64,000 nt of DNA from Heteronotia binoei (taxonomy: Eukaryota). The stretch's first letter is position 1; every line of letters starts with the position of its first letter. A program made the translations under genes and the position numbers. The notes under the pieces were generated by a model, which worked only from the letters and a program-made list of their open reading frames with translations, was not told where the DNA came from and made no database searches. The stretch is taken from contig NC_083239.1 in NCBI RefSeq assembly GCF_032191835.1, positions 35,340,001 through 35,404,000 of the forward strand, written 5' to 3'. Positions 14,722 to 64,000 of the stretch are shown here, in pieces.

Positions 14722-14742
14722 CGCAGCAGAAATTATCCACTG
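14722..14742 (-). CDS. Candidate micro-exon QWIISAA (21 nt)
   Basis: ttttttccttttcag|...|gtaagtac; strong sites; flanks duplicated around 17501-17524. Confidence 0.55.
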
Positions 14743-14984
14743 CTGAAAAGGAAAAAAAAATCATGGTATCTTATTTCTAAATAATGTTACATTCTCTCCA
14801 CTGATTTCTGTTCACACTATCTGTAGCTACAATCTGTACTTCCTCCATCTTTTCTATAGCCATGGGTTGATTTGTCTTGGCCCCTCCTCAAATATTATAT
14901 GAGGGAAATAATTGGATGGCTGAAGAGAACTACCCAGTGGGGAGGCACCCAACTTTCTTCTCCTCCTGCTAAATATAGAAATTG

Positions 14985-17500: not shown

Positions 17501-17524
17501 CAAGTAGTCTTTGACTTTTGTATA
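17501..17524 (-). CDS. Candidate micro-exon YTKVKDYL (24 nt)
   Basis: ccccctccctatttag|...|gtaagtac; strong sites; duplicate context of 14722-14742. Confidence 0.55.
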
Positions 17525-25505: not shown

Positions 25506-26034
25506 CTGTTAAAATAAAATACTTTGTGATTAGGGTCCTCTCCAAACATAGGTAATGAGACAGATTCTCTTTCAGAGGGTCAAGGACAAACTTAGGGTCC
25601 AAAACTATAAATGTCTTTTTAATGCTTTTCAGTGCTGTAGAAAGTACTGTCCAGGACTTTTTTTGTAGAAAAAGCCCAGCAGGAACTCATTTGTATATTA
25701 GGTCACACCCCCTGACAGCACCATTGTTTCACACAGGGCTTTCTTGTAGAAAAAGCCCAGCAGGGACTCATTTGCATATTTGGCAACACCCCCTGACACC
25801 AACTGTGTTCCTATGTGTTCATGCTAAAAAAAAAAAAAAAAAGCCCTGGTAGTGTCTATAAAGTATCTGCAAGGAGAATATGAGTTTGATTACATTAAAA
25901 AAATATGATCCAGTGAATACAAATAGTGAATTAATTAATCAAATTTATTTTCACTATTTTGAAAGGCTGATGAATAAATAGAGCCCAGGAGAGAGGCAAG
26001 AGTAAGCTAGCTGAATATAGAGAACATTAGATAA

Positions 26035-28966: not shown

Positions 28967-29343
28967 CTGTTAAGGAAGCTTCTAATGGACATTAACGTGC
29001 AGACAACAGCTTCTTGCACAAGTTTTTTTTTTTTGCTGCTGCCTGTAAAGTTCACAAGGATATTGTATGTAATACTTTAGTTTCTTAAAATCACTCGTCT
29101 CACTTGTAACTGTCTATTTTAATTTGTTTGTATATCCCATTTGACAGATGAACCACTTTTAAAATTCTGAGCAGTGTGTATAATGATCGGTGCTGGCTGT
29201 AGACCATAAGCCGCCCTGAGCCCGCCTCGGTGGGGTAGGGCGGGATATAAATCGATATAAATCGAATAAAAATAAATAAGAAATAAATTGATTGTATGAC
29301 ATTAGGAGATATGGCCTAATATGCAAATGAGCTCCTGCTGGGC

Positions 29344-29422
<79 letters not shown>
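29344..29422. repeat. (TATC)n tetranucleotide microsatellite
   Basis: About 19 perfect units read directly. Confidence 0.95.
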
Positions 29423-30196: not shown

Positions 30197-30265
30197 CTCT
30201 TGTCCCTTGACCTCTAAACAAAGGACAGAGATGAGAAGAATGGCAGCTGCAGCCTGAAGTTTCAT
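30197..30265 (-). CDS. Signal-peptide exon of secreted-protein gene 2: MKLQAAAAILLISVLCLEVKGQE
   Basis: aagATG, hydrophobic core, V-K-G motif, donor gag|gtaagg; 69 nt like the paralog at 2452-2520. Confidence 0.8.
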
Positions 30266-31942: not shown

Positions 31943-33056
31943 CATAAGAACATAAGAGAAGCCATGTTGGATCAGGCCAATGGCCCATCCAGTCCAACAC
32001 TCTGTATCACACAGTGGCCAAAATACACACACACACACAGTGGCTAATAGCCACTGATGGACCTCTGCTCCATATTTTTATCCAATCCCCTCTTTAAACT
32101 GGCTATGCTTGTAGCCGCCACCACCTCTTGTAGCAGTGAATTCCACATGTTAATCACCCTTTGGGTGAAGAAGTACTTCCTTTTATCCATTCTAACCTGA
32201 CTGCTCAGCAATTTCATTGAATGTCCACAAGTTCTTGTATTGTGAGAAAGGGAGAAAAGGACTTCTTTCTCTACTTTCTCCATCCCATGCACAATCTTGT
32301 AAACATCTATCATGTCAACATTTCTCCAAGCTAAAGAGCCCCAAGCATTTTAACCTTTCTTCATAGGGAAAGTGTTCCAAACCTTTAATCATTCTAGTTG
32401 CCCTTTTCTGCACTTTTTCCAATGCTATAATATCCTTTTTGAGGTGCGGTGACCAGAATTGCACACAGTACTCCAAATGAGACTGCACCATCGATTTATA
32501 CAGGGGCATTATGGTACTGGCTGATTTGTTTTCATTTCCCTTCCTAATAATTCCCAGCATGGCGTTGGCCATTTTTATTACTGTCTTGACATTTTCAGTG
32601 AGTTATTTACCACGACCCCAAGATCTCTCTCTTGGTCAGTCTCTGTCAGTTCACAACCCATCAACTTGTATTTGTAGCTGGGATTCTTGGCCCCAATGTG
32701 CATTACTTTGCACTTGGCCATATTGAACCTCATCTGCCACGTTGATGCCCACTCACCCAGCCTCAACAGATCCCTTTGGAGTGCCTCACAATCCTCTCTG
32801 GTTCTCACCACCCTGAACAATTTAGTGTCATCTGCAGACTTGGCCACTTCACTGCTCACTCCCAACGCTAAATCATTTATGAACAAGTTAAAGAGCATGG
32901 GACCCAGTACTGAGCCCTGTGGCACCCCACTGCTTACCGTCTTCCACTGCAAAGACTGCCCATTTATACTCATTCTCTACTTCCTATTAATTAGTCAGTT
33001 TTTGATCCACAAGAGGACCCGTCCTTTTACTCCATGACTCTCGAGCTTACTAAGGA
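31943..33056 (-). mobile_element. CR1 LINE 3' fragment
   Basis: SGVPQGSVLGPMLFNLFINDL, (F)ADDTKLF, SHLEYCVQFWSPHLKKDI; (cataagaa) tail. Confidence 0.9.
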
Positions 33057-35199
33057 CTGAACCAGACCATTAAGGACAGTATTTCTACTCAGTCTAGCAC
33101 CAACTAGCCTCTAGCAAAGGTTTTTCCTAACACCAGTTACTGTATCCTTTTAACTTCATATGTCAGGGACTGAACCTAGGACATTTTGCATAAGATGCTG
33201 GCACCAGCTCTGCTTAAGGAGCTATACATCATTTTGTGTCATTTTTTAACATAACACAACAAGAAGCTTTCTTTTGCATCACCATACAATGGACAGTGTA
33301 TCTTCAGCCTCCAGGCTCCGAGGTAATGTCAAAGTGTAAACAGCCACATCAATGCTATGATCTCATCTTCCTCTAACCATTAAAGGGATCCTTTGTTCAC
33401 AAGAAGGGAGCAGGGACAGATGGAACAGCCTGGGGCAACACAGGTTTCCTGAGTTTATAGGGATGCATCAATGTATCTACTGTTTTCGCTACCTAAGACA
33501 GGGCCTCCAACCTTCTTCAGTCTGTGTGCCCCTTTGGAATTCTGACACAGGGAAGGCAGAACCAGCCACAAAATGGCTGCTGAAGGAGATGCAAGAGTAT
33601 TTTTGTTTTTTAAAAAATACACTGTGGTGTTATCTACAGCGGAAACAATGTCATTATAATTTACAAAACCAATCATATCTCTAATGGCCAATCAGAAAAC
33701 CTGTTGGGATTAAGCCCCACCCATTTTCTAATAACACTCAGTGAGCAGTAGGATCGACAGGTATTTTTCTGTTGAAAAAGCCCAGAAGTAATAATTTGCA
33801 TATTATGCCACACTTCATGACATCACCATTGTTTTGCCTATTAGGCCACACCCCCAGAAGCAATTATAAAGCAAAGTTTGTTAGACATTGAATGCCAGGG
33901 CGACATTAGTTCAACTGCATTCCTGCTGAAAAAAAGCCCTGAGAATAGAAGTTGTCAGGTGCCATGGGGACCCTGATTTAAGAAATTATTTCAATCTGCC
34001 TTTTCCAGAGAGGAAAAAAAATTGCAGAAAAAAGAAACAAAATATATCAAAACAATTAATAGGGTATATTTGCTTAGTGACAAGTTTTCCAATATTTCAA
34101 ATATTTGGATGTTTAATCTGGCTTCTGAATACATTTAAAATCACCCCTGCATTGATGTACTCATATGTGGCGTTTCAGAGCCATTCTAACTAAGCATTAG
34201 GCCTCTAGATGAAACAGGATTGTATACAGAGAACAGTGGATCTAAAGAGAACTGTCTTGTTGGATTAGAGAACAATATTTGGATCATGTCCTGTTGAGCC
34301 CGTGGTTAACAGGATTATGAAAATGAGAGCTATCAGTTAATTAAAATGAATTGGAGCTATGTAAAAAAAAAGGGGGGAACAGACCAACATTTGCCTTAAC
34401 CAGACACTTAAGATGTTTGAGGGTGTTGGATTCCATCAACAAATGTTAGTGTTTCTGTACATGTGCTTGCCTTGTAAGCAGGAGGATGAGAGAGGGTGAA
34501 TGTTGCTGCTGAATAGGTTAACAAGATATTTTGCTTGGTAATCACATTTGCACTATGGCCACAATTATTTAAAAATCTCCTAATGGCTTGGAAGATGAGG
34601 CTGATAGTCTATCCCAAGGCCATTGTCAATTATTAAGACTGCAATTTCCTTCCCTCCAGAAGTGAAGTGGAAATTGTTATTTGATTTGCACTTAGGTCGG
34701 TAAGATCTGTCTCTTTTTAGTAGTAATATTATTTTGCACTAGGGAATAGGCAAAAGCAATTATAAAGCAAAGTTTGTTAGACATTGAATGCCAGGGCGAC
34801 ATTAGTTCAACACCCAGTTTTTTAGAGCACTTGCGATATGTTGTCACCTTGGCTGCTCATCTCTCATTATCGGAGATTCTGGGCCAAAGAAGGGCATTCT
34901 CCTTAACTAGATGGAGAGCACTCCCCTTTTGAGCTGGTGGAGGGGTGATATATAAAGACTCCTATGCTGGAAAGGATTTGCCTCTTCGACATTGGAGAAG
35001 TTGAAACTTCAGAACATATTTTACTCTATTGGCCACTCTATCAAGAAATTTGCTAAAGAGATCATTTGCCCTCTGCTCAGAAGGTATCCTAGCCTCTCTG
35101 TCTTATAGCTTATAGGATCTTTCTTATGGGTGTTAACCCTCAGGTCACAGCACTCAGTGCAAGATTCTTCACAACTGCCTGCAAAATCTGCCAGGAAAT

Positions 35200-42800: not shown

Positions 42801-43937
42801 GATCCCACAGGTCCCTGATGTCTTTCAGCAGAGAGTTCCATCAGGTCTGGGCCAAGACTGAGAATGTCCTAGCCCTCACTGAGAACAGTTGGACTCCTTT
42901 AGGACTGGGGATCACTAGTAGACTTCTACCAGTAGAGTGTAATGCTCTTCCAGGAACATAGAGGAGGAGGTGGTCCTATAGATACATTGGTCCCAGACCA
43001 CTCAAGGTCTTAAAGGTCATAACCAAAATCTTGAATTTAACTTAGTGCTCAACGAGAAGTCAGTGTCGCTGGCGCAGCACAGGTAGAACGTGTGCTGTCC
43101 ATGGCATTCCTGTTAGGACTCGCACTGGACCCATTGGAGTTTCCGGGTTAAAGCCAAGGGTAGGCCAGAGTATAGCGAGTTACAGTAGTCTAGTCTGGAG
43201 GTGACCTTTGCATGGATTATTGGTTATTCATCTCTGAAGGTTTGTTAGGGTGCCAAATGATACGATTTGATTGATTAGTTTCTAAATTTTAATCTGTAAA
43301 CTTTGGTTTTAAACTGTGATGTTGATTTTATTCTTGTTCAGTTGTTGGAAGCTGCCCTGAGCCCTACTTGTTGAGGAAAGGATTGTTATAAAAATCAAAT
43401 AAAAAGTAATGAAATTCCCAGCAGATGCCCCATTCTGACACTGACCCAGCTCATATCTACATGGTTGCAACAAGGTTGCTATATCAACCTTTTCCTAGCC
43501 TATTATGGGCTGTATGAGGCCTAGCCTTTCATTCTTGGTGCTTTCTGATCATTCCTATATGCTAAAAAAAACCCTGTATTTCTGCCTTTACTAATAGTGG
43601 CATAACCCTGGGGACAGGGAGCGGGCAAGCTCGGAGCAGGTGCTGCGACGACCCGCATCCATAGCAGCGACGGACTGCAAACGCAGTCGGCTCCACTTCC
43701 TCCACCTTCGGACGCCTGCCAGCAGCAAAAGCTGGCTCATTCTTGGCTGTCTTCCCGGACACACCGATAACAGCACGCTGCCCGGCCGACACCCCCGGAC
43801 AGCTCACGGCCGCAATTCTCTCTTGGAAGTCAAGCAGGTGGGCACAGACGTATTCCACGGTCAGGGTCGCTACGTCCACCGTCTCCAGAGAAGTTATGGA
43901 GACGGTGGACGTAGCGACCCCTCCCTCCCCGACAGAG

Positions 43938-44313
43938 TGAGGGAGATGACTTGCCCGACACAGGGCTTCAGGAAAGAAAATCAGGCAGACACGTGCAACT
44001 AGTGCCAAAAGGTGTATTAACATATATACACGACAAGTGCTCTCTTGTGCAGTCTATACAATATCACCTCCACGGACAAAGTGCTTCGCCTAACCACCAT
44101 CTCACAGGGAGAGACCTGTGTGATGCACACACAGATCATATATAGTCCAAGCAGCCAATCCTGGCCGTGCTGACTCAGCAGATTGCATCACTTGGCTTCT
44201 GCCGGCTCAAGCCGGTCTGCTGATCAGGTCACTGTGACCTAGCCTGGCAGCTAGATCACCAGCTGTCATACTGTAGCTGTCAGACTGGGTTTATGTAGAT
44301 TCTTGCTCCAACA
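43938..44313 (-). mobile_element. Copia 3' LTR (376 bp, lacking the outer ~22 bp), preceded on the minus strand by a PPT-like agattaggaggtg
   Basis: Appears identical by eye to 47259-47634. Confidence 0.9.
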
Positions 44314-44398
44314 CACCTCCTAATCTATTTAAACCCAGTGCACCATAACACTTTACACAGTTTACATACATGTCCACCAGCAACATTACAGTTCATAT

Positions 44399-47059
44399 TT
44401 ACGTAGCTCGGAACCCTTTCCGGAATTCGTTCAGGAACTCATCATGATTGTAAAACACATCATCGTGTTCCTGTTCAGCCAGCTCTTTCAGACGCTTGGC
44501 TTCAGCCTCCTTCTCCCTTGCCTCGCACTCTGCCACCCAGGCTTTCCATTTCTTAGCCTTTTCTTTTAACATTTCCTCAAATCCGGGTGGGTCTGGATTG
44601 ACAGTCAGAGTGACATAGGGACACTTGTACCTAGCGGGACGTTGGCCTTTGGTGGACCTGGCAGACACCCGTGGCCCTGTGCTTGGACCAGCTTTGTCTT
44701 CTTCGGGTTGCTCTGTTCCCACCTCCTGGGCTGGTTGCTCTGCCCCTGTAATTGGGTGTTGAACCTCCTGACTCTCACACTTTACCTCCAGTTCCTGCAT
44801 TTGAGGCTCTGCCTCCTGACTCTGCTCGTCGGGCTCTGTGCCAGCATTCGGCTCACCTTCTCCAGCCCCACTGGGTGCCACCTCCTGGGCTGGAGTTCTG
44901 GGCTGCGCTCCAACATCGTTATCGCTACTTGGCAGCAGGACAAATTGTTTCTGCAAGGAGTGCAACCTTGGCCAGCTGCTTTCTTCATTGAACTGGGCAC
45001 TCTTACTAAGTGTTATCTTGCTTTTGCTATTGCAGAAACGATAACACCTGGCCCTTGGCTTGTAGCCCAGAAAAATTAGGCTCTCTGCCCGGACATCCCC
45101 CTCCCCGCTACTCGTGGAGTGGATGCCAACCCGAGCCCGTGACCCAAAGACTTTTAAAGAACTCAAATCTGGGGTCTTGTTCAACAGTAACCTGTAAGGC
45201 ACATTTTTCACAGTATTACACCAAACCCTATTTTGCAAAAAAACAGCTGCATGTATGGTTTCTGCCCAATAGGTCATTGGCAGTTGTGCATCCTCTAACA
45301 TGCAATACATCACATTCTGCAATACAGCCCCATGCCCATTTTCTCGGGGCGTTGCCGGGTTCGTCAGACGGTGGGCGATGCCCTTGTTCTCCAGCCAACG
45401 TTTCATCTGGTTAGATAAGAATTCCCCCCCTCTGTCGGTTTGTACAGCCAGGAGATTAACCCCTAATTGTCTCTCCACTGCTTTGACCCACTTGGTGAAT
45501 GTCTTATACACCTCAGACTTATGCACCATGGTGAAAACCCACGCGTACCTCGTGTGGTCGTCGGTGGCCACCAAGCAGTATCTCCTCCCCGACAGACTCT
45601 TTGGCAATGGGCCAATAACGTCTAAATGGACTAGTTCCAGGGCTCGTGTGCTTTCCCTTGAGCTTTCTTTAGCAACAGCACACGCCTTGCTTTTGGTCTT
45701 CTTGCAGACCTGGCAATCCAAGTAACATTTGCAAGGATTTACTTTCAAACTAGGCACAAGCTCCAGGGTTTTCTTTAACGCCCTAAATCCGCAGTGCCCA
45801 AGTCTCCTATGGAGCAAATGTATACAATTATTGTGCACAGGCTCATTCGACACCTGAGCCACCTGGGCACAATCACTCTGGACCACATACAGTTTACCTT
45901 CCCTCTTTCCTGTCACAAGCAACTTTCCCCCACCTCCCAGGATTTTGCAGCAGGTTTTCTCAAATCTCACCTGGTATCCCTGGTCAAACAGTGTGCTAAC
46001 ACTCAACAGGTTAGACTGCAGTGAGGGTACATACAACACATTTTGCAACATACATTTCAGTGCAGGAAATTCCACATTGCCTGAGCAAACAGAATTGGCA
46101 GTGGTCCCATCAGCCAATCTCACATACTTATGCTCAGGACTGTCAATGTTTTTCAACAACTCCTTCTCGCAGCAGAGATGGCTCGTTGCCCCGGAGTCTA
46201 AAATCCAAGCAGACCCTGTGCTCTCTACTGCAGACGTGACCAGCCGGGTTGCTTCCTCACACGGGCTGGCGGTCCTCCGCTCTCGCCGCACACGCCCCCG
46301 CCTCTTCTCCCTCTCAGGGCAAGCTCGGAGCAGGTGCTGCGACGACCCGCATCCATAGCAGCGACGGACTGCAAACGCAGTCGGCTCCACTTCCTCCACC
46401 TTCGGACGCCTGCCAGCAGCAAAAGCTGGCTCATTCTTGGCTGTCTTCCCGGACACACCGATAACAGCACGCTGCCTGGCCGACACCCCCGGACAGCTCA
46501 CGGCCGCAATTCTCTCTTGGAAGTCAAGCAGGTGGGCACAGACGTATTCCATGGTCAGGGTCGCTACGTCCACCGTCTCCAGAGAAGTTATCAGGGGAGT
46601 GTACTCAGGTGGCAACGACGACAGCAAAATGTACACTCTGTCGTCTGGAGCTACAGTCTTGCCTCTTGCCTCCAGCTCAACGAAACAGTCCGTTAGCCGT
46701 TTGATGTGATCTTTCACACACCCTCCAGCCGGCATAACGGTGCGGAACATCCTCCTTGTCAAGGCCATGAGGGAACCAGCAGTGGTGCTAACATGCACCG
46801 CACTCAACGCGTCCCAGGCAGCCTTGGGAGTGTCCTTCCCTCGCACATAAACCAGCTGGTCATCTCCTATAGACAGCACTATGTTGGCCAGTGCCTTATC
46901 CGATAACACAGTCTCGGCAGGAGATAAGTCAGCAGGGGGGTTACTCACGAACAGCCATTGCCCTTCACGCTTGAGGTAGTGTTGCATTCTCAGGCTCCAC
47001 ACCGCGTAGTTGGCTGAGGTGAGCTTCTCAACGGCTACTCCAAGCTGTTGCTGAGCCAT
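44399..47059 (-). CDS. Ty1/copia gag-protease-integrase polyprotein (886 aa) without RT/RNase H
   Basis: CYGCGSSQHLLRAC knuckle, WILDSGATSH protease, GKLY, HRRLGH...CQVC, LVHLDVIGP, QTDRGGEF; no YVDD motif. Confidence 0.95.
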   Translation of the reverse strand: MAQQQLGVAVEKLTSANYAVWSLRMQHYLKREGQWLFVSNPPADLSPAETVLSDKALANIVLSIGDDQLVYVRGKDTPKAAWDALSAVHVSTTAGSLMALTRRMFRTVMPAGGCVKDHIKRLTDCFVELEARGKTVAPDDRVYILLSSLPPEYTPLITSLETVDVATLTMEYVCAHLLDFQERIAAVSCPGVSARQRAVIGVSGKTAKNEPAFAAGRRPKVEEVEPTAFAVRRCYGCGSSQHLLRACPEREKRRGRVRRERRTASPCEEATRLVTSAVESTGSAWILDSGATSHLCCEKELLKNIDSPEHKYVRLADGTTANSVCSGNVEFPALKCMLQNVLYVPSLQSNLLSVSTLFDQGYQVRFEKTCCKILGGGGKLLVTGKREGKLYVVQSDCAQVAQVSNEPVHNNCIHLLHRRLGHCGFRALKKTLELVPSLKVNPCKCYLDCQVCKKTKSKACAVAKESSRESTRALELVHLDVIGPLPKSLSGRRYCLVATDDHTRYAWVFTMVHKSEVYKTFTKWVKAVERQLGVNLLAVQTDRGGEFLSNQMKRWLENKGIAHRLTNPATPRENGHGAVLQNVMYCMLEDAQLPMTYWAETIHAAVFLQNRVWCNTVKNVPYRLLLNKTPDLSSLKVFGSRARVGIHSTSSGEGDVRAESLIFLGYKPRARCYRFCNSKSKITLSKSAQFNEESSWPRLHSLQKQFVLLPSSDNDVGAQPRTPAQEVAPSGAGEGEPNAGTEPDEQSQEAEPQMQELEVKCESQEVQHPITGAEQPAQEVGTEQPEEDKAGPSTGPRVSARSTKGQRPARYKCPYVTLTVNPDPPGFEEMLKEKAKKWKAWVAECEAREKEAEAKRLKELAEQEHDDVFYNHDEFLNEFRKGFRAT

Positions 47060-47236
47060 CGTGCCGACTCCTCCTCACGGCTGGCTGCCGACGTCCCTCT
47101 GGCTCTCAAACAGAGAACGGTGGTGCTTCTGTGTCCTTCACCGGCGTTCCTCGCCTCCGGCTCTTTCCAAACTCACAGTCAGCTCAACTCTCAACTCTCT
47201 CCTCCGCGCAGCGGAACCGCCCTGGGCCCATAACCC

Positions 47237-47634
47237 TGTCGGAGCGGGAGTAGCAGAGTGAGGGAGATGACTTGCCCGACACAGGGCTTCAGGAAAGAAA
47301 ATCAGGCAGACACGTGCAACTAGTGCCAAAAGGTGTATTAACATATATACACGACAAGTGCTCTCTTGTGCAGTCTATACAATATCACCTCCACGGACAA
47401 AGTGCTTCGCCTAACCACCATCTCACAGGGAGAGACCTGTGTGATGCACACACAGATCATATATAGTCCAAGCAGCCAATCCTGGCCGTGCTGACTCAGC
47501 AGATTGCATCACTTGGCTTCTGCCGGCTCAAGCCGGTCTGCTGATCAGGTCACTGTGACCTAGCCTGGCAGCTAGATCACCAGCTGTCATACTGTAGCTG
47601 TCAGACTGGGTTTATGTAGATTCTTGCTCCAACA
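47237..47634 (-). mobile_element. Copia 5' LTR (398 bp, TGTTGG...CCGACA) followed by ggttatgggcccagg PBS-type motif (47221-47235)
   Basis: TG...CA termini and the characteristic copia post-LTR motif. Confidence 0.9.
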
Positions 47635-47929
47635 GTATGAGGCCTAGCCTTTCATTCTTGGTGCTTTCTGATCATTCCTATATGCTAAAAAAAACCCTGT
47701 ATTTCTGCCTTTACTAATAGTGGCATAACCCTGGGGACAGTATGAAGCAGGTGAAAAACATTCCCTCTAACTGCTGATGTGAAGAGCTGGAGGGGGGAAA
47801 TTCCTCCTCAGTTTGCACAAGAAGTAGCCAGTCCCTTGGTTACCCATATTGAGTTAACTGATCTTGTTCCACTAATGGTAATAATAAGGCCATTAAAAAA
47901 AAGCACACACACACACCATTTCAGTGCAC

Positions 47930-48270: not shown

Positions 48271-49632
48271 CTAAGAAAGTAGGTAAGTAATTTACCACAG
48301 ACTAGGGAAAGGACTCTGCTAAAGGTAAGTACTTTCAGATTCTACTTATATCAGAGCACATCCTTTCTTCCATTCATTAAAATAAGCTTGGAAATTATTC
48401 AGCATTCCTAGGCTGCATAACATCTTTCTCCTCATCAACACTATGTACTACAGGAATTTATAAAAAATGTTGTTCCCGCCATCATTTTTTGAGTTCTGAG
48501 AGTTTAATGGTTGCCACAGGAAGTGGGACCCATGACAAAATGGCTGCCCTGAAAGCTTTTACATCACACAGTGACAGTGTGGTGAATCCAACCACTTTGT
48601 ATGATGCCTTTCTCTAACTTAAGGGGAGTTCCTCAAACTTAGATGGCTGTCCCTCCAATGCAAGACACATTTCAAACTTTCAAGGGAAAAATGCAGGAGG
48701 AAATGCTCTTTCTTTTTCAGTATGGTGGTAGGATAAGACGAAGGTCCACACCAGTAAGTTTGAAGGCAATTGTCTTCCCATGACAAAGGTAGCTGTTTGC
48801 CTGTTGACATGACCTCCAGATGCAAAAATGATACCTCAAGATTTCTCCAGAGGCATCTCTTTTTGGAGAATGTGGAGGAAACCCAGAATTGACTCTTTGG
48901 TTTGGAAAAGAGAAGTTGTTCATTTTCAGCTTCCAAAGGTAAGAAAGTTCCTTTGGAATGTAAATTCATTCTACTAAGGATAATATTTTCATCCAGCACC
49001 AGAAACCTTTACTGGGCCTATGCATTACACTGAAGAATATTTCCCAAACAACTCAGGAACCCACCCTGAGCCTGCATTGCGGGAAGGGCAGGACATAAGA
49101 ATGAATGAATGAATGAATGAATGAATGAATGGATGGATGGATGAATGAATGAATGAAAATACACATCAACACAAGAAATTTCCCTCACCACAAAACTTCA
49201 GTCAATTATCAAATAGTTGACTCCCCCATCCCTAATATTATTCATTGACATTTGCAGATACATTGAAAGTAAACTGAATAGAATGTGGTAGTGTTGTTCC
49301 TATTTCACACCATCAAGGGGAAAATGCAATAAAGTAAGGAAATTCTACTTGGGCTCATGAGTAGTTCCTACTCTCTTCAATGGGAACTGTGCCCTGTAAC
49401 AGTTTTCTACTGATCAGCTTTCTGAAATTCTCAGCTTATGAATTCCTCCTCATATTTGGCATATAAAATCATGGTGTTGTTTTATTTCAAAATTTCCAAC
49501 TTCATGGTGCTGATTTATTGTGTTTTTGTGGTTTCAGAGGCTCCTTGACCATTGTATTAAAAAGATGTTGAAGTCAAAGTTGTCACTGAGGTTTGTATAC
49601 ATAGAAAGAAATGATGGCGTAGAAATACTCAC

Positions 49633-50743: not shown

Positions 50744-52901
50744 CTATTGTAACTCATATATGGGGAAGAGGGAGATTAATGAGCTTGCACAGACCTTTGA
50801 TTTATTTTGTGGCATGCAATACAAAGCTGTAAAGCTGTACTACTGTTGGGTTATTTTAAAGTTAATCTAATGGCATTCCAAGAGCCAACCTTACAATGCT
50901 AACATATGCTTTGAAACAAAGGCACAGCCTACTTCTATACTCCAGAGACTGAGATACTGGCTGGGAGTTTCACCCTGAAGTCTGGCTGTGAGTACCACCT
51001 GTAGCATGAACTAACAACTTATTCTATTACATAAACCACTGGTGATTAATAAAAATATAGTGGCCTACCAACAGCCAAATCTGTTTCCATTCTCTGTATG
51101 TAGATTCTAATTTCCTTTTGTATCCCCTAAAGGCTATAAGCACAACCTCCAATTCAGAGTCCAACCGATTGATTTGCTGTCTTCTTTTTTAAAACTCTGA
51201 CTACTGTGTAGAGGGCAATATGGTTGAATTCAGATGGCCAATTTGGTCCAACACAGGAATAGCCCATGATCAAATCAAAAAGGTGCATTCAAATGCACAC
51301 ATCTGGGTCCCACCTCGCTCCCACCCTTATCTTGTCCACCACCATCACTATACTGCTTCAAAAAGCTACCACTTACTAAGTATCAAACTATTCATTTTTA
51401 AAAAAATAACATAGGTACTTCTGTTGACCCAAACAGAATTTTTCTAACCTGATAGAACCCTTAATATGTTAACAGTAATAGTGATGATGATTCCACATTC
51501 GAATTGCCCAATAACCTATCAAATATGGCATCCACTCAACCCTAATCCATTCATCCTGGTAGAGAGAAACTAAAGAACATAGTATTGTAGAGGGCTCCCT
51601 ACACTCAACTCCATTTCCTAGGGGTGGTGCTCCCTTTTTAAAAAGAGGAATAAAAAACATGAACAAATGACTATGCCATTCTATCTAACATATCAGGTTC
51701 CAGTGACTATGGATTTTTTCTCATTGTATAACGATTCTTCTATTCTTAATCCTCACTCTAATAATAATCCCTCCACTAATAGTAACCTTAACAGTTTCTT
51801 GCCTGATGTACCAAGAACTCGTGTTTATCTTCAGTTAATGATATGTGAATCAGGAATAGGGATAGGCATGGAATGCAAAAATGGTGGTTTGTTTCATTTC
51901 ATGGTTTGTTGGTGTGCCCAATTCAGTGGCTCAGTTCATTTTGTGAGGTTTTTTAATTTTCTGAATGAATTGTGGTTTGTTGATTCATTTGGTTTGGGAA
52001 GGCATGAAATGTCCTGGAAGTGATGTTATCACTCTGGTTATGTTGCTGGGGGCATGCTCTATCCCTTGGGGAAAAACCTTTATGATAATCATAGAGTTTT
52101 TTTCCGAAGTGATAGAGCATCCCCCCGGCAATGTGCCCGGTGCAATAACATTACTTTCATTTCATGTCATCATGCCAGGCAAGTTGTGACTTGTGAGAAG
52201 GATCCCCTGCCCATAATGACACAGATGAACTGCCCAAAAAACCAAGCTGCTGTGTTTTTTGAGTTGTATCTGAACCTATTCAGTATTACCCATGAATCTG
52301 CTGTTTTAGGCAATAATCGGGAATCCTCACAGATTCAAATGAAGCAGGATAAGTAGAACATGAGCATATGAACTGTTAGTAATGATCATTGGTCTCTTTC
52401 TCACATTACCCTCACTCTTTCTCACATGATCCTTTGAGATCGATGGGATCCTTTTGAAAACTGTGAGGTAGAATCCTGAAAATTATGGATGCAAAGTGGA
52501 GGCCATAACTTTTCCCTCCAAAAGTTGCCACAACTTCCTGCCTTTAAGAAACAACTTATCTCTTTGTTTGCCTAATTTGACTTACAAGGACTTATGAGGA
52601 GACACTGCTGATGCTTGCCAGAATTGTGATATTAAAGGGGAGAGTGGGATATATATTTGATAAAATAAAAAAATATGGTTTCATTTGATATTTCATTGCA
52701 CTGATTTGTCTTACTCTTACTTTCCCATTGCATGGTTTCTAACTCTCCTCTGGCACAATATTCAGAAGAATATAGAATAAGTATCAACCTAAAATCCAAA
52801 CCATAATGACATTTAAATTATGCATGTTATGGCAACTTTGATTCCTTGAACAATGTCATTGCCATAAGAGTATGGACTTCAGTTTCAGATTCTACACTCG
52901 C

Positions 52902-52931
52902 AGATGGTGTAGCAGAAAGAGCCTCATCTTC
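52902..52931 (-). pseudogene. Dead micro-exon EDEALSATPS (acceptor AC, donor GC)
   Basis: Homologous position in the repeat unit; tttttac|GAA...TCT|gcgagt. Confidence 0.5.
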
Positions 52932-55166
52932 GTAAAAAGCCAGAAATAATAAAAATGTACACGTTATTAGTTATGATCCTTGATCTGTTTCATGCAATAG
53001 AGTCAGTAAGCTTGAGGGAAATACCCTTTTGTAAACTGCTAACACGAGGGACTGACTCTGCAAATGAATTCACAGAACATTCATGCTCTCAGTCTTGGCT
53101 AGATTCCATCCATGGAGTTTTGTTCAACCTGGGAGGATGGTGAGCAACTGCTGATGGTGGTTAAATAATGTGTTTTTTTTTTGCTAATAGGCCACCTTCA
53201 GGTATGGAGTTCATCCTATTCCATGGGCCAATAAGATAAAATGAGCCCATAAGGGAGTGTCATTTTTTAATTGTGCCCCCCCCCCTAAAAAAAAAACATG
53301 TAGATCTGGTCCTGGTCACTTTCATTCCCTTGATTCATAGATACTTTCCCCATGGACTTTTTTTTAACAGGAATGCACAGAAACATAGTTCCGGCTGGCT
53401 TGGTATCAGGGGGTATGGCCTAATATGCAAATGAGTTCCTGCTGGGCTTTTTCTACAAAAAAGCCCTGTGTGAAACAACGGTGACATCCGGGGGTGTGGC
53501 CCAATATGCAAATATGTTCATGATGAGCTTTTTCTACAAAAAAGCCCTGATTTTCCCCAATACAATTGGAGAGGACCTAGGTTTCAACACATCAGTTCAT
53601 CCATGCTATTCAGAGAGGATTCCCTTTTCCAAATGAAGAGATTTCCCTGATATATGTTTCTCTGCCAGTCAGTTACTGTGACCTGAGGACTTCAAGTTCC
53701 ACTGAAAACTTAGAGACTCTCTAACTGAATGGTGTGAGAACCCTTGAGGAAGAGAATACCGGTTGATCAATGAGTTCCTACCACTTCCTGCCTTTTGAGG
53801 CAGGCTATCTCTTGTCCTAGTTTTCATTTCCATAAGCATTGGACAAATTTGGCTTTTGATCTACCTCTCATGCAGGCTCTAACAATGAGTGGGTATCATT
53901 TGGTAATCTGGTGCTTCCTTGGGCTGATTTGTCTGTATTACTCTCTCCCTCCCCCACAGTTTCCTACATTACTTTAAAAGTTAGAGTGATAAATGATGAC
54001 ATAGAAATGATGTATGTCATGGCAACTTTTGATTCCTCAACCAAAATCATTGTCATTAAGAGAACAGACTTCATACTCAAAGCTGGTTTTTCAAATCAAG
54101 ACATTCATCTGATGTGAGTTTTTTCTGCCAGTCATTATTTGTGACATTAAAAAATCAAAGTTCCACTGATAAATGAGAGCCCTCCCAAGTGATCTGTGTG
54201 AAAATATTTTTGGAAGAATCTGCAAGTCACTTCCTAAGGAGGCAGGTGTCCTTTTTTTTTCTAGTTTTCCTTTCCTTAAGCAATGGGCAAATTTGACTTT
54301 TGATCCACTGCTCATTCTGGCTCCAATAGTGAGTGGGTCCCATTTGATAAGTTATTGCTTCTTTGGACTCATCTGTCTGAATTAGTCTCCCCTCAACACT
54401 GGTCAATTGTTTCCCACTGTCCTCTGCCACAAGTTTCGACAAAAGTTTGTAGAATTAGTATTAACTTAAATGTTAACAATAATGCAGGATGACATGAAAA
54501 TGACGTACATCATGGCAACTTTGATTCCTCAACTAGTGTAATTGTCATTAAGGGTATGGACTTCATTTTTCACCTGTCAACATCCCCACCCCCCTCAGTT
54601 GAGCCTACTTTCAGCAGGATCTGAATTTAAACCCAGTGATCTCTCAGTCTGCTAGGGTCCCTTCATGGAGTTTCAGCCCAGCTTATGAAGATTTACTTAA
54701 AGATCCAACTAATTTAGCTTTTCATGATCCACAGCTCAAGCTGATTCTAATTCTTAGAGGGTTCCACTTGATCCTTTGATGCTTCCTTGGGCTGATTTGT
54801 CTGTATTAGTTGCCCCACTGCCCACCTGATGGTTTCCTATGGTCCTCTATCCCAAGTTGCAACAAAAAAGATGTGCACCAGTATCAACTTAACTTTTAAG
54901 AATAATAAATTATGACATTAAAATTATGTACAACATGAGAATCCTGATTTGTTAACCAATACATTAAGAGTATGGACATCGTTTTTCACCTGTCAACTTT
55001 CCCCCTCAGCTGAGCCCCAGACCACTGTGTTCCTACAACCAAAGTAGGTTCTCAGTATTCAACATGGTATTCTATTTGTTCTGACTCTCTCTCTATCCCT
55101 GCCTTCCTGCACCTTCCATTCAAGCTTACATGGACTTAAACTGCCTTGATTAAAAGAAATACTCAC

Positions 55167-55193
55167 AACGGTTGTAGTTGCAGCAGTTGTTCC
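55167..55193 (-). CDS. Thr-rich micro-exon GTTAATTTV (27 nt, phase 0)
   Basis: ccatgtttttag|...|gtgagtatttc. Confidence 0.7.
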
Positions 55194-55815
55194 CTAAAAA
55201 CATGGATGAGTAATATAAATATATGAAATGTTCATTATGATCCTTCGTCAGTCTCATGTTATGCTGTCAGTGGCTGTAAGAGGTAAACAGGAATGCTAGG
55301 GATACAATGGAGGACTGCGTTCAGCAGGGCCTGAATCTGAGGATTGACTCATGGAAACTTGGTGCTCTCCAAGTTTGCTAGGCTCCGTCCATGGAATTTC
55401 TGCCCAGCCAATAAAGATATGTGGGAATGCTTGATGCTGGTTCAATGCAGTTTTGTTTGCTAACAGGCCATTTTCAATGCCTTGATTTTTGTGAATTTCT
55501 CCCTACACATTTGGAGACTTTTACGGCTCAACACTTCTGCTTTCCTTGCTATATCAGAGGAGACCCTCTTTTTCAAAGCAAGAGATTCACTGGATGTGTG
55601 TTTTTCTGCCAGTCACTTTTTGTGACCTACCAAAAATATAAATAAATCAAAGTTTTACTGCTAAATGAGAAGCTCTCCTAGTGATCTGTGTGAAAATTCT
55701 TGTGGAGGAGGCTTCCATGACTCTCTCCATGACTCTCTCCCTGTCCCTGCCTTCTTGCACCTTCCATTCATGCTTACGTGGGCTTAAATTGTCTTGATTA
55801 AAAAGAAATACTCAC

Positions 55816-55842
55816 AGCAGTTGTAGTTGCAGCAGTTGTTCC
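55816..55842 (-). CDS. Thr-rich micro-exon GTTAATTTA (27 nt, phase 0)
   Basis: ccatgtttttag|...|gtgagtatttc. Confidence 0.7.
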
Positions 55843-56803
55843 CTAAAAACATGGATGAGTAATATAAATATATGAAATGTTCATTGTGATCCTTCATCAG
55901 CCTCATGCTATGCTGTCAGTAGCTGTCAGTTGAATGAGGGAATGTCAGGGATACTTTAGTGGACTGTGTTCAGCAGGGTCAGAATCTGATAAGTGGTTCA
56001 TGTTAACCCAGTGCTCTCCACGTTTGTTAGGCTTCCTCCATGGAGTTTCTGCCCAGCCAATAAAGATGTGTAGGAATGGCTGGCAAGCGACTCCTGATGT
56101 TGGTTGAATGCAGTTTTGTTTGCTAACAGGCCATCTTCACTGCATTCATTTTTTTTGTGAATTTCTCCCTACACATTTGGAGACTTTTGGGGTACAACAC
56201 ATCATCTTCTCCATGCTATATCAGAGGTCCTCTTTTTCAGATCAAGAGATTCACTTTGTGCATGCTTTTCTGCCAGCCATTTTTTGTGAACTGTAAATAA
56301 ATCAAAATTGCTCTGATTAATGAGAGGCTGTCTCCCAAGTGGCCTTTAGGAGGCAGGTGACCTTCACTTAAGTGAATGACTAATCTGGCTTCTTATGATT
56401 CAGAACTCATGCTTGTTCTATTTGTGCGAAGGTTCCACTTGATCCTCTGATGCTTCCTTGGACATCTCCTCCCTCCTCACAATTGTTTCTATAAAAGGAG
56501 GTAGAAGCAGTAATAATCTATATGCTAAGAATGATAAATGATGACATAGAGATTATGTACATCATGGCAACTTCGATGTCTTAACCAACGTCATTCTCAT
56601 TAAGAGGCTGGACATCATTTTTCACCTGTCAACTATCCCCCTCAACTGAGCCCCAGACCATTGTGTTCCCATACCAACAGTAGGTTCTTAGTATTCAACA
56701 TGGTATTCTATTTGATCTGACTCTCTCTCTGTCTCTGCCTTCTTGTTTCTTCAACACATTCTTCTGTGGAGTTAAACTGCCTTGATTAAAAAGAAATACT
56801 CAC

Positions 56804-56830
56804 AACGGTTGTAGTTTCAGCAGTTGTTCC
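56804..56830 (-). CDS. Thr-rich micro-exon GTTAETTTV (27 nt, phase 0)
   Basis: ccatgtttttag|...|gtgagtatttc; the phase-1 reading contains TGA, favouring phase 0. Confidence 0.7.
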
Positions 56831-57344
56831 CTAAAAACATGGATGATTAATATAAATATATGAAATGTTCATTATGATCCTTTGTCAGTCTCATGCTATG
56901 CTGTCAGTGGCTGTAAGAGGTAAACAGGAATGCTTGGGATACAATGGAGGACTGCGTTCTGCAGGGCCTGCATCTGAGAATTGACTCATGGAAACTTGGT
57001 GCTCTCCAGGTTTGCTAGGCTCCCTCCATGGAATTTCTGCCCAGCCAATAAAGATATGTGGGAATGCTTGATGCTGGTTCAATGCAATTTTGTTTGCTAA
57101 CAGGCCATTTTCAATGCATTGATTTTTGTGAATTTCTCCCTACACATTTGGAGACTTTTAGGGCTCAACACTTCTGCTCTTCATGCTATATCAGAGGTCC
57201 TCTTTTTCAAAGCAAGAGATTAATCTGATGTGCGTTTTCCTGCAACTCGCTTTTTTGTGAACTAAAGAAAAAATGGTAAAGGAGAGGCCTCCCAAGTGAT
57301 CTCTATGAAAATCCTTGTCAAGTCAAGTCAGCCTTTATTGGCTT

Positions 57345-58215
57345 AAAAATAATGCTACAGATTAATATAGTCAGAAGCCTTGGAGTCCTACTGGAGCCTT
57401 CACTATCAATGGAGGCCCAGATAGCAGCTACTGCCAAGTTCACCTTTTTTCATCTGAGGCGGGCAAGGCAGTTGGCTCCCTTCCTAGAGCATCAGGATCT
57501 GGCAACAGTGATCCATGCAACGGTCACCTCGAGACTAGATTACTGTAATGCCCTCTACATGGGGCTGCCTCTGTGCCGAACCCGGAAGCTGCAGCTAGTG
57601 CAGAACGCGGCTGCCAGATTGTTGTTGGGGCTCCCAAAGTGGGAGCACATACAGCCGGGGCTGTGTGAACTGCACTGGCTGCCAGCTATATACCGGATTC
57701 GTTACAAAGTGCTGGTCATCACCTTTAAAGCCCTATATGGCCGAGGACCTGCCTACCTTAGGGACCGCCTCTTCCCGTATGAACCCCAGAGAGCACTGAA
57801 GTCAGCAGGGAAAAACCTGCTGACTATTCCCGGGCCAAAAGATGTAAAACTCCAGAGTACCCATACTTGGGCTTTCTCTGTAATGGCCCCACAGCTGTGG
57901 AATCAGCTTCCAGAAGAAATGCGGGCCCTGCGGGATTTTGAACAGTTCCGCAGGGCCTGCAAGACCGTTCTCTTTCGAATGGCTTTCACTGAGTAATTGC
58001 TAAGTAAATTCACCATCTGAATAGCACCAACATATCAACTTATTAACATTTACTTATTGTTTTTAGAATTTTAATAGTTTTTAATTACCTGTTGGTTTAT
58101 ATTGTCAGTTATAATTTAATGTATTTTAACCCAATGTATAACTAAATTGAATTTTGTTGTGAGCCGCCCTGAGCCTGCTCCGGCGGGGAGGGCGGGATAT
58201 AAATAAAATGTGTTG
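57345..58215 (+). mobile_element. L2 LINE 3' fragment
   Basis: VRSLGVLL...SRLDYCNALYMGLP...LWNQLP; gagccgccctgag tail. Confidence 0.85.
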
Positions 58216-59118
58216 TTGTTGTTGTAGTATAAAACAGGATAGAAACACAACTTTCATGTACACTTGTATAAACAAAAAATATTTCTGTGATATCCTTTGT
58301 TGTGACTTTAGAGCAGAGTACAGAAACTTGGCTGACCTCTCAGTAACATTGATTGAAAAATCTTTCAAGAGTCTATGGACCTTAAGTGCATCAAAGCAGT
58401 CCATCATACTGGCTAGAACGGTATAAATACATAAAACATAGAGTCATATACAGATGGCAGTGCAGGAGAACATGAGTAATCAGCCCCGTAGGCAGGATTT
58501 GAAGAATTGGGGGGGGGGGGCTTGATTTTTTTCAGGGGGCACATAGTGGCCCCAACCTCCATGGCCTTCTCTCCTACCACAGCTGAGGAGGAAAGCTGCC
58601 AGCTCACTGCCATACAGCCTCCCCACTCCCCACAGCTGCCCCAAGGTGATCCCTTTCTACCCCTCTTCCAGCAGCTCTGGTGGGGAGCCACTCAGAGATT
58701 TAGATACGTGCCACATGGTCTCCTGCCCTTACCTGTGGCATGATCCAGCTAGGCAAGCCCAGCGGGACAAGGGGAGTGGTGGAAGGCACCACCTTGTCAC
58801 AACTGACTTCTGGGGCTACAAGACCTCCAATTAGGATTTCTTCCTGTTGGAGGACGAGCTGAGGCTGCCCAAGCGCAGCTCCCACCCTCGCTTGGGTGGC
58901 CAGCAAGACCAGGCCAGAAAATCCCTGCAGGCGAACATCACCTCTCCACTGATCCCCAGCCCCGGACTGCAGCCAGAACCTCCACTTGTATGTGCCAGCC
59001 TACCCTACCCTGCCCTGTCTGCAACGGAGCCATTCGCCCCCTATCCCCGCCACCCCACTTGAGAGGCAGAATGGTCTCTTCTTGCAGGCACCCTCTAGCC
59101 CAACAACAGCCCAACGTG

Positions 59119-59611
59119 GAGCTTAACTTTCAGTCCTGGGCGTTGAAAGTGCCCCGTTGTTTCTGCTTGCTGAGGGGTCAGAGATTTCTTCCAGCCCCTA
59201 AGCAAGCAGAAGCAACTCCGAGCTTAACTTTAAGTCCTGGGCACTGAAAGTACTCCGTTGTTTCTGCTTGCTGAGGGGTCAGAGATTTCTTCCAGCCCCT
59301 AAGCAAGCAGAAGCAACATGGAGCCTAACTTTCAGTCCTGGACACTGAAAGTGCTCTGCTGTTTCTGCTTGCTGAGGGGTCAGATTTCTTCCAGCCCCTA
59401 AGCAAGCAGAAGCAACTCAGAGCTTAACTTTCAGTCCTGGGGGCTGAAAGTGCCCCATTGTTTCTGCTTGCTCAGAGATTTCTTCCAGCCCTTAAGCAAG
59501 CAGAAGCAACGAGGAGCTTAAGTTTCAGTCCTGGGCTCTGAAAGTACCCCGTTGTTTCTGCTTGCTGAAGGGTCAGAGAATTCTTCCGGCCCCTAAGCAA
59601 GTGGAAGCAAC
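59119..59611. repeat. Five tandem ~100-bp units, each containing a ~61-nt hairpin
   Basis: Unit starts at 59119, 59220, 59321, 59420 and 59514. Confidence 0.9.
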
Positions 59612-61160
59612 GGTGTATGATGACGGCAGAATGGAGAAGGATGCAGACGAGGCACTGGAGGCTGGTTAGGGGCCCCAAATCAAGGGGCCCTGCCTAGCAG
59701 TCAAAGGGCTGTTCCCCCACAGGCCCCCTCATAGCTACGGACCTGTGAGTAATTGACTCAACACATTTTTGTTTACAAGGGCAATACCTAGCTGAATAGG
59801 CTATTTTATTGAATCTGCTATCAAGAATAGCAGAGGGCATAGCATTGCATCTAGCGAGAGAAAACACTCCGCATTGTTGTGGCATCTGCAAGGAAGATAG
59901 GTAAGAAGCCATCTTTTCTGTGCTAAGAGGAATTTCAAAGCTCAAAGGGGCTTTCACTTAATTTTGTTAGTCAGACTATTTAACTCCTGGTGCTCAATGT
60001 CTAACAATCCCTGTGGAAGAGGCTGCCAAATTGCCAAAGTTCTCCTGCTACTTCCTGCCTTTAGGAGTCAGGTTACCTCTTTCCTTGTTTACTTAAGCAT
60101 CTGACTAATTTGGATCATGCTGGTTCTGACTTTAAGGGTGTATCATTTGATAATTTGGGGAGGATTGTGAGCAACTGCTGATGACTTCTTATTTTTTTTT
60201 AATTGTCTATAGGCCAACTATATTGTCTCAATTAATGTATATTTTCGGCTTTCAGTTTAGACACATAAGTCATGACACATCAGTTCTTTGATGTTATGCC
60301 TAGGGATGCCATATCCCCCAGTGGGAACAGGGCTCTCTTGCTGCCAAGCCCCACTACCACTGGCCAAGAGACTGACAGAGGAATTACTCCTCCCCCCAAA
60401 AAGAGACGAACACCAAAAACTGACTCCTGGGCAAAAACTCTATGATAGAAACTAATTCTACAATAGAGCTTTGGCCAAAGAAACAGAACATCCTCATCTC
60501 CCCAATATCCCTGATGTGCCTATATCACCCACGTCAAATAGGGACATTGTTGAAATGTTGGCATCCTTCCCTGCCCCCAGTAAGTGAGCCCCCTCTCAGC
60601 TGCTTGGTGGGACCTGGCAACACAGGAGGGGACCCCCTTTTCCAAAAGAAGAGACTCACCTATCGTGGGTTTATCTGTCAGTCACTTAATTTGACTTGAA
60701 GAGTTCAAGGTCCACTGATAAATAAGAGGATCTCCAGCTGATCATTGTCAGAACCCTGGTAGACATGGGTGCCCGAAAGCAACACAGCTCCTACCGCTAC
60801 CTGTCTTTAGGAGGCAGGTGACTCATAAACTCAATTTCCTTCACCTCAGCTTTGGACTAATTTGGATGAACATGAGCCACTTCTCATGCTTGCTGTAATT
60901 GTGATAGTGTTTCATTTGATAATTTGGTGCTTCATTGTGCTGGTTTGTCTGAATTAGTCTCCCCCCACAGAAAATGGTTTCTTTCTCTTGTCTGGCATAA
61001 TTTTCACCAGAAGGATATAGAATCAGCATTAAATTCAATACTAAGAAAAATAAATAATGTCTTTGATATAATGTATGCTAGACAATTTTTATTTATTGCT
61101 TAACCAATGTCCATGTCATTAGGAGTATAAATTTCATTTTTAAGATTGAGAAATACTCAC

Positions 61161-61187
61161 AGTTTTTGGTGTAGTAGCCTTTTCCAC
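61161..61187 (-). CDS. Micro-exon VEKATTPKT (27 nt, phase 0)
   Basis: tccatgtttttag|...|gtgagtatttc. Confidence 0.7.
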
Positions 61188-61464
61188 CTAAAAACATGGA
61201 TGAATAACACAAATATACAAATAGTTATGATTCTTGATTGGTTTCATGCTTTGCTGTCTGTAGCTCTCAGAGGCACGAGCTCCCTCCTCCATCTTTAAAT
61301 GGACTGTGATCCTGGTTCCAGACTCCCTGGTCTCCCTTTTTGTGTTACCATTTATGGACTGAGTTAACTCTGGCCTAGTGTCAGAGCCACAAGACTCTTA
61401 TGGTTATGAACTTATATTATGTGAACACAGGCAAACTGCTTCTATGGACATTCAGTGACATTAC

Positions 61465-61479: not shown

Positions 61480-62997
61480 CTATAGGTAGTGAATCCTATG
61501 TGATCTGGAGCATTTGGCAACTGTGCCAGCTCCAATATGGACAATTTGTGTTCAGGATTCAAGAAGGTGTAGCTGTTTTATTCCCTATATTTCTGATGTT
61601 GCTCATGCTATCCTGAAAGAAAGGGGAAGAGGCTTTTGATCTAATTATCTTTCATATAGCACAGAAACACAGTTAGAAGGACTACATCGTTTCCTGATTC
61701 AAGAAGGAGTAGCTATTTCCTCCCCAGTGGATATTGCTCATGATCTCTACAATGAAAGAGAATTCTATATAAAGTGCAAACAATAGCCACACCCGAACAC
61801 AAAGTCCATATTTGTATCAGAAATTAATACTTCAAAACTGGAACTCCGGGTTGTGATATGGTGAACTGTGGAAATAGAGTCCAATGCTCAAGTCTTATAG
61901 CCAGTGTAAGAGTTGAAAGCAGCAAGGCACAAGTCACAACAGGGATGTGCGTAATGCCCTGTTTCACACGGGGCTTCTACAAGCTTTTTAAAACATTGTC
62001 ATACCCTGGGCAAAAACACCATTCTATTACACCATTAGAAGGCACTTGAATAGTGCTGAGTAACAGTCCCAGTTACACTTATAAATCAATAATTAATATA
62101 AAATCCAAAATGGAATATTTCAATATGGAAATGAATGAAGAATTTTGGAAGGCCACAAATGTATCTGGCCTTTTGCCAGCAGCAATTACATACATAGCAG
62201 ATAAAATTATTGTAAATATGCACCTTCCAGTTTAAGTCCTAAGAGTGAAATTCCCTTATTAGGGCCAGTGTAACATCAGTATGTATCAACTAGGGCCAGG
62301 GTGTTTTCTGTCCTGGCCCCTGCCTGGTGGAACAAGCTCCCACTAGATTTGGACCCTGCAGAGCCTGCTGCAATTCCACATGGCCTGTAAAACTGAGCTG
62401 TTCTGCCAGGCCTTTAGTTGAGGCGGTGGAACCACTGAACACCGATATCGCCTTCCTGTCACATGCTGGCCCACGCTGGAGTAATGACTGATTTTGATTA
62501 GTATCACTGATGGTTGTTGTGCAGCCAGGGACTAGGTTTTTGAAATGACTGCCATCTGAATTTTTAATTAGTCAAATGGTTTGTTTGGTTTTATGTTTTA
62601 ACTAGTTGTTTTAGCAATTATATAATTTGTTTTATTTTGATGTGATCTGCCCATCTGGGAAGGGTGGGATAGAAATGTGAAGTAATAAATAAATGATAAA
62701 TAAATATCAATCAGTATCAGTCTCCTATAAGGTTTTTAATATATATTTTGTAATAAACACATGTACTTTTGTCTATAACTATTGATGTTTTTAACCTTTG
62801 GCCCTTTAGTATTCTGAACTTCCTCTGGAGGTTTTTGCCGGGTTGGTTTAGTTTCTCTTCCTCTCTCTTTGTGGTTAAAGAGACAAGTGGCCAGTGGTGC
62901 AGCCTGTAGTAGGATGTATATCATGTGACTGTCTCCCTATGGAAAAATGTCTCCCCTCTAACAGAGCACAGACGAACTTAACGTGTTGTGATGATCT

Positions 62998-63104
62998 GGG
63001 CATTTCTAACAAAGAGGAAAGCCAGAGAATTCTTTGGAAGATTCTGGTGTGGATGTGAATTCTTCCACAGAATTCTCTGGCTTTCCTCTTTGTTAGAAAT
63101 GCCC
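62998..63104. repeat. Perfect 36-bp inverted repeat with further imperfect inner pairing
   Basis: 62998-63033 is the exact reverse complement of 63069-63104. Confidence 0.95.
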
Positions 63105-64000
63105 AAATAATCACAACACATATTCACATGATTTACATCCCACTACAAGTCACTTAGAGTGACCTGTAGACTTCAGGCATCCTTGATAATTGAGAAGCTG
63201 TATAAGTGACCCCTGTGGGAACCCTTTTAGAAAAAGCTGCCTCGTCACCCTTTGGCAGTGTTGCTTGCATTTAAGAGTCTTAAACTATCCTCTGCTATCA
63301 AAAATTGACCCACTAAATCACTTGATTTTATCTAAAAACCTTAAAACTGCCTGAGACAACAGATCACAATAAGTAATATTATGAGTCAGTCTTCTCCTCA
63401 CCGCACACTTCTCTCCTCTACTTCATCATTCACTAGACTATTCTGTATAATGCATCAAATTCCAATGGCTATAGAAGCTATTATTGTATAGCTGTTCCTC
63501 TATTCTTAATCCTCATTCTGATCCTTGTAATAATTCTCACGTTAATCCGGCCCCTTCCCGCCCGCGCTGACTTCAGGCGGGGGCCGAGTTTGCCTCCCCG
63601 GATGGAGTGAGGCAACGGCCTCTTCATCCGGGGATGCATCGGGCGTGGTCTGTTGGGGCTTTATAAGCCCGGCCACACCCGAGGCCACGCACTTCTGCTG
63701 GCCGTTTTGGTCCACCCTGCAATAGTACAGGCTCCTCCGGTCGCCGTATTTTTGGGGCCAGGTAGGAATTTTTTCATCTCAACTAATTGGCCTGGGTTGG
63801 GATGTTTTTCGCCTACCTTGTACTGTGGCTTTGAGTTTGGGTTATTGTTTAGGTAACTTTATTTGCCGGGACTTGAAGTCAGGTTTGTATTTGGTGGGCA
63901 CCCACGGTTTTCCCGGTTTAAGGGAAGTAGCGGGGGACGGACGGCAGTGGGGCTGTACGGCTCTCTGCTGTCTTTCCCGTTACAGGGTTACCTCATCTGG

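Follow-up and report, generated by a model that had tools for sequence, protein, structure and literature searches.

A stretch of 64,000 nucleotides from the gecko Heteronotia binoei (NCBI RefSeq assembly GCF_032191835.1, contig NC_083239.1, positions 35,340,001 to 35,404,000 of the forward strand) was analysed and is referred to here as the window. The subject is an array of threonine-rich mini-exon cassettes between 52.8 and 61.3 kb. Coordinates are positions within the window, and the cassette features are read on the minus strand. The window contains one gene family and mobile elements only. Two members of the family were recognised, a neighbouring paralogue (gene 2) and a further paralogue (gene 1). 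At 75-85% identity, the 9-13.5 kb part of gene 2 aligns collinearly with 54-63.5 kb, and the cassette stretch would thus be its counterpart in a third paralogue. The region 52.8-61.3 kb is probably part of this third tandem gene, the start of which would lie past 64 kb.

A preliminary description of this DNA had listed four open units of 27 nt, and all four were recovered on the minus strand, each with gtttttag on its upstream and gtgagt on its downstream side: mini-exon A (VEKATTPKT) at 61161-61187, B (GTTAETTTV) at 56804-56830, C (GTTAATTTA) at 55816-55842 and D (GTTAATTTV) at 55167-55193. The introns between them measure 0.6-4.3 kb. Read in phase 0, the four mini-exons together encode 4 x 9 = 36 residues, comprising 18 Thr, 7 Ala and 1 Pro. 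The pattern common to exons B, C and D occurs three times in the window (0.00 expected, from 100 shuffles). When both strands were scanned with relaxed settings for open Thr-rich units of the AG...GT type, the cassettes and one paralogous exon of gene 2 were returned, with no others.

That paralogous mini-exon (g2a; ETAAAPTTVEK, 33 nt) lies at 10191-10223 on the minus strand and is intact. Another copy in gene 2 (g2b; TQTTAPPTEI, 30 nt), at 9142-9171 on the same strand, has a donor changed from GT to AT and is probably dead. A seventh exon copy, Z (EDEALSATPS, 30 nt), which was absent from the earlier list, was found at 52902-52931 on the minus strand; it is decayed, with its acceptor changed from AG to AC and its donor from GT to GC.

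The repeat units were mapped against unit B (56290-57270, 981 bp), which is complete and carries its exon at unit positions 441-467. Unit D (54708-55629) is nearly full, covering unit positions 7-892 at 89.5% identity to B, and unit C (55730-56292) covers positions 8-553 at 82% identity and is shortened after 553. Unit E (54428-54587) is partial, with only positions 631-793 from the 3' side of the exon and no exon part. In unit F (53983-54154) positions 1-68 are joined to 665-743, so that 69-664, including the exon, are deleted. All of these are on the minus strand. Aligned in this way, the related units of 0.56-0.98 kb form a tandem array, much as had been proposed, and the unit map supports growth by tandem duplication of exon plus intron. 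The exonless units reported near 54.1 and 54.6 kb correspond to F (a deletion) and E (a partial unit). A third such region, at 60-60.9 kb, is of a different nature and does not represent a cassette from which the exon was lost: the stretch 59984-60965 (minus strand) is the intron flank 3' of exon A, collinear with 10680-11548 of the paralogue and related to 53613-53949. Exon A has about 90 nt of upstream intron in common with units B-D. Together with Z, it evidently represents an older type of unit than B-D.

A maximum-likelihood tree was built over the approximately 550 bp common to g2a, g2b, B, C and D. Its topology was (g2b,(g2a,(C,(B,D)))), the B/C/D group being supported at 83/88 and B plus D at 100/99. 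By this tree the array grew to its three copies B, C and D within this gene, later than the gene duplication. Units B and D are the youngest pair, though C sits between them, an arrangement that points to duplication of two units at once or to gene conversion.

Splice signals and reading frame

The divergence between older copies is unevenly distributed. Between A and D, the 40 intron bases preceding the exon matched at 30 of 36 positions and the 10 bases following it at 10 of 10, as against 13 of 27 in the exon and 18 of 37 and 19 of 48 in the deeper intron. Pooled, the splice flanks (-40 to -1 and +1 to +10) matched at 40 of 46 positions and the exon body plus deeper intron at 88 of 172 (Fisher p = 7e-6). 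The same contrast was obtained for A against g2a (p = 8e-4) and for g2a against D (p = 0.01). Candidate sites were ranked with rough splice-site matrices, and the percentiles are approximate; by these, the acceptors of A-D fall in the top 3.5% of all AG, and the donors in the top 4-6% of all GT, on the minus strand.

The seven exon copies measure 27, 27, 27, 27, 30, 30 and 33 nt. All of these lengths are divisible by three, which implies that three independent insertions or deletions preserved the frame. Frame 3 is interrupted by stops in B, Z and g2a, and frame 2, which gives peptides of the EQLLQLQP type, meets a stop in the gene 2 mini-exon at 14722-14742. The Thr-rich frame alone is free of stops in all intact mini-exons, and the signal exons of both paralogues, by ending in phase 0, are in keeping with it; the Thr-rich phase-0 translation given in the preliminary description is thus the one that these data favour. 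Conservation of the splice signals, lengths and frame together fit real, fast-evolving exons.

Neighbouring paralogues and mobile DNA

The signal-peptide exon of gene 2 (MKLQA..., MKLQAAAAILLISVLCLEVKGQE) lies at 30197-30265 on the minus strand and ends on a codon boundary, followed by gtaagg. Its counterpart in gene 1, of the same MKLQA type (MKLQAVAVLLLLSLLCLEIKGLE), is at 2452-2520, also on the minus strand, and both end in phase 0 at a strong donor. In both paralogues a TATAAATA box stands about 75 nt upstream of the signal-exon ATG, which hints at the signal exon being the first of the gene. A search for this exon across the window returned the copies at 2.5 and 30.2 kb only, with none in 61.2-64 kb. 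The signal exon of the third gene had been said to lie probably beyond 64 kb, and this agrees with the present results: because the gene is collinear with its paralogue, its start is expected roughly 15-17 kb past the end of the window. Its product would probably be secreted, as judged solely by paralogy with gene 2.

Two further mini-exons belong to the gene starting at 30.2 kb, both on the minus strand: YTKVKDYL (24 nt, 17501-17524) and QWIISAA (21 nt, 14722-14742). Their splice sites rank in the top 0.1-3% by the same rough matrices. The two exons are barely alignable with each other, while the flanking introns (14500-14960 and 17280-17720) are about 84% identical; these exons appear to have evolved much faster than the intron around them. 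Scans of 2.6-9.1 kb for terminal exons yielded nothing convincing. A candidate exon at 48272-48301 had no paralogous support and was dropped.

At 4976-5264 and 33199-33487, 2.5-3 kb upstream of each signal exon, are two blocks that are 75-77% identical. The short candidate terminal reading frames within them differ. The blocks may be the 3' end of the preceding gene or a common upstream control element.

The intron between A and B contains a transposon block (57300-59980; no strand assigned) made up of the 3' part of an element resembling a long interspersed nuclear element (LINE), with an open reading frame (ORF) of 214 aa, other high-copy repeats, and a 101-bp tandem repeat present in five copies at 85% (59112-59611). 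RNA data were taken from a single metatranscriptomic run, X1, with 5% of sampled words in common, all of them in the transposon block, and its contigs were placed on 55700-61300. Thousands of these contigs, at 90-99% likeness, fell only on the transposon block (57.3-59.9 kb). Some of those on the 101-bp repeat skip one or two repeat units. A Pfam search with the 214-aa ORF (57352-57996) gave no family; it was classed as a repeat because a second copy occurs at 24412-24849 and because of the thousands of X1 contigs.

Other mobile DNA was noted within and around the three genes. An element resembling a short interspersed nuclear element occurs within the cassette array (53400-53551) as a tandem dimer, 53405-53468 and 53486-53549, the two parts being 87.5% identical, and the same element was found at 7759-7955, 25652-25802 and 29301-29351. 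A short palindromic element with inverted arms of about 110 bp lies at 62931-63122; gene 2 has a copy at 12108-12217, and the element is probably a miniature inverted-repeat transposable element older than the gene duplication. The region 33-52.8 kb is crowded with mobile elements. Within it, 43512-47740 carries identical direct and internal repeats of 106, 275 and 381 bp at 99-100%. This is a young element of the long terminal repeat type, and the site may be a 3' intron of the third gene or an intergenic part. An ORF at 32578-32973 on the minus strand matched the Pfam reverse transcriptase family RVT_1 (E = 1.2e-12); it represents a LINE fragment that immediately precedes the promoter region of gene 2. 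Positions 1-170 and 23183-23352 share 170 bp at 97.6% identity, far above the surrounding paralogous DNA, and could reflect a young mobile element or gene conversion. Runs of N occur at 2770-2927, 17843-18075 and 20515-20654, all outside the cassette region.

Favoured explanation and alternatives

The explanation that we favour, with somewhat better than even confidence, is that A-D are working cassette exons that contribute 36 residues to a small secreted protein, as a short spacer of the O-glycosylated type. On this view 52.8-61.3 kb would be the central part of a minus-strand gene, the third in a tandem series of gecko paralogues that encode small, probably secreted proteins; their mini-exons, 21-33 nt long, would all be read in phase 0. 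Unequal crossing-over would have multiplied a cassette of roughly 1 kb made of intron, one mini-exon and intron. Copies A-D would have retained strong splice signals and an open frame and, with all four spliced in, would add 36 residues, half of them Thr, most likely forming a short extended O-glycosylated spacer. The other copies would have been shortened at formation, have had their exon deleted, or have lost both splice sites, and the transposon block would have been inserted later into the A-B intron. The sequence itself shows the array with its exon-like anatomy, the selective conservation of its splice signals, the exon lengths in multiples of three, the paralogy with a gene that possesses a signal exon, and the order in which the duplications occurred; from these we infer the splicing, secretion and O-glycosylation of the A-D product.

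Several observations weigh against this explanation. The 5' end and last exons of the third paralogue were not located, which leaves room for a break in the gene outside the array. In gene 2 a single Thr-rich exon is still intact, which implies that the module is not clearly essential. None of the X1 contigs placed on 55700-61300 fell on the cassettes at 90% likeness. The stop-free frame of the gene 2 signal exon had no match at E <= 0.001 in a library of 1.84 billion proteins, and a word search for annotated relatives of the corresponding frame of gene 1 gave no candidate, a 23-residue signal peptide being a weak query in both cases. Frame 2 is likewise open within A-D. Finally, the divergence among B, C and D is 10-18%; in such young copies intactness alone proves little.

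Some of these points are shared with an alternative that we regard as unlikely, though it deserves to be taken seriously: that the cassettes are relics, the paralogue or this part of it being a decaying pseudogene with exons that are no longer spliced. Among the nine related units or exon copies there are three, Z, g2b and F, that are visibly dead, the array is split by the 2.7-kb transposon block, mobile elements crowd 33-52.8 kb, and neither the X1 run nor the protein searches provided a cassette contig or a relative. Transposons within introns are normal, however, and the four copies A-D are all still intact. The old pairs (A and D, A and g2a) have moreover kept their splice signals while the exon body and deeper intron have fallen to about 50% identity, which argues for long purifying selection on splicing.

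A further alternative, that the exons are real but translated with a shift of one base into a Leu/Gln-rich peptide like EQLLQLQP, is improbable. No stop interrupts the shifted frame in A, B, C, D, g2a, g2b or Z. Both signal exons nevertheless finish with a complete codon before a strong donor, and the candidate mini-exons are all multiples of three, so that this phase carries through; the mini-exon with the best splice sites of all, at 14722-14742, has a stop in the shifted frame. Least credible of all is a dispersed or satellite-type repeat holding an AG...GT open stretch by chance, for although repetition of the units is evident and there are further repeats in the vicinity, the copies are confined to collinear sites of two paralogous genes, conservation peaks exactly at the splice signals, and X1 contigs are absent from the cassettes while numbering thousands on the neighbouring transposons, which argues that the cassettes are not a dispersed repeat.

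Comparison with known systems

If A-D are working exons, the gene would resemble mucins in some respects. The repeats are rich in Thr, Ala and Pro, the protein is probably secreted, and the repeat number has grown recently in one lineage, as in the proline/threonine/serine-rich domains of mucins; spliced in phase 0, with the composition given above (18 Thr, 7 Ala and 1 Pro of 36), A-D would form Thr/Pro/Ser-rich tandem repeats of the kind by which mucins are recognised. The long repeat domain in one large exon is lacking, the repeats being carried by four 9-residue exons. In two reports, mucin repeats are described as running to hundreds or thousands of residues within one large exon, and lineage-specific mucins as arising through gain of exonic repeats (PMC9417175; PMC13345508). 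In the gecko, each repeat is an exon of its own, separated from the next by 0.6-1 kb of intron, with 36 residues in total. The term mucin-like domain, used in the preliminary description, was an overstatement, since four mini-exons supply 36 residues where mucins have hundreds in one exon.

A gecko-restricted secreted family, with an O-glycan region built at one repeat per mini-exon and with a repeat number that could change through unequal crossing-over of 1-kb cassettes and through exon skipping, is a tentative proposal that we consider possible, if doubtful. Were it true, one repeat per mini-exon would be a route to mucin-like function unlike the within-exon gain of repeats in mammals. If its exons are expressed, the array would show how a Thr-rich segment of the glycan type begins to grow: the paralogue has one or two copies and this gene four, gained as whole exon and intron units rather than as repeats inside an exon. 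Such growth would extend the present account of the origin of mucin-like function (PMC9417175) by a second mechanism and by a case from reptiles. Tuning of length through exon skipping, or through copy number among individuals, is speculation. Literature searches brought up no direct precedent for mucins with one repeat per exon or for secretory calcium-binding phosphoprotein (SCPP) genes in geckos.

The array itself is real but modest, and the copying of exons is a well-known process; the family is of more interest than the array, with its tandem paralogues, tiny exons, and splice signals and introns that outlast the coding sequence, as in venom and saliva proteins. It appears to be lineage-restricted to geckos.

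Tandem duplication of exon cassettes is classical in the caseins and other SCPP genes, in collagens and in the PEVK region of titin. As in those genes, an exon plus intron unit has been copied in tandem here, in multiples of three of one phase, which would let any number of copies be spliced in, and copies have freely decayed or been lost; each intact unit has one exon with its flanking intron, a frame-keeping length and conserved splice sites. The gecko family differs in having no detectable sequence relative and 9-residue Thr-rich exons, and in being predicted from DNA. SCPP genes in particular have a non-coding exon 1, an exon 2 that encodes the signal peptide and two further residues, and a location in a cluster by SPARCL1 and the enamel genes. 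Phase-0 introns and small exons, both typical of SCPP genes, are predicted in the gecko family as well (signal exons ending in phase 0; mini-exons of 21, 24, 27, 30 and 33 nt), whereas the Ser-x-Glu phosphorylation motif that also marks SCPP proteins was found in none of the mini-exon peptides seen.

Exons that evolve faster than introns are a feature of families of proteins secreted by exocrine glands, such as the rodent SMR/VCS family and the snake venom toxin genes. In the gecko genes too, introns and splice signals outlast the coding sequence (A against D; 14722-14742 against 17501-17524), and the genes are tandemly duplicated with a conserved signal exon. They have, however, no homology to either group.

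In the sialomucins endomucin and CD45 an O-glycosylated region is drawn from several small or alternative exons. The variable exons of CD44, a sialomucin too, likewise spread such a region across several small or alternative exons (PMC2120678, PMC2199896). The O-glycan-type region of the gecko gene would be similarly split across cassette exons, and splicing could vary its length. Those three, however, reside in membranes and their exons are larger and differ from one another; the gecko exons are near-identical recent duplicates in what is presumably a small soluble protein.

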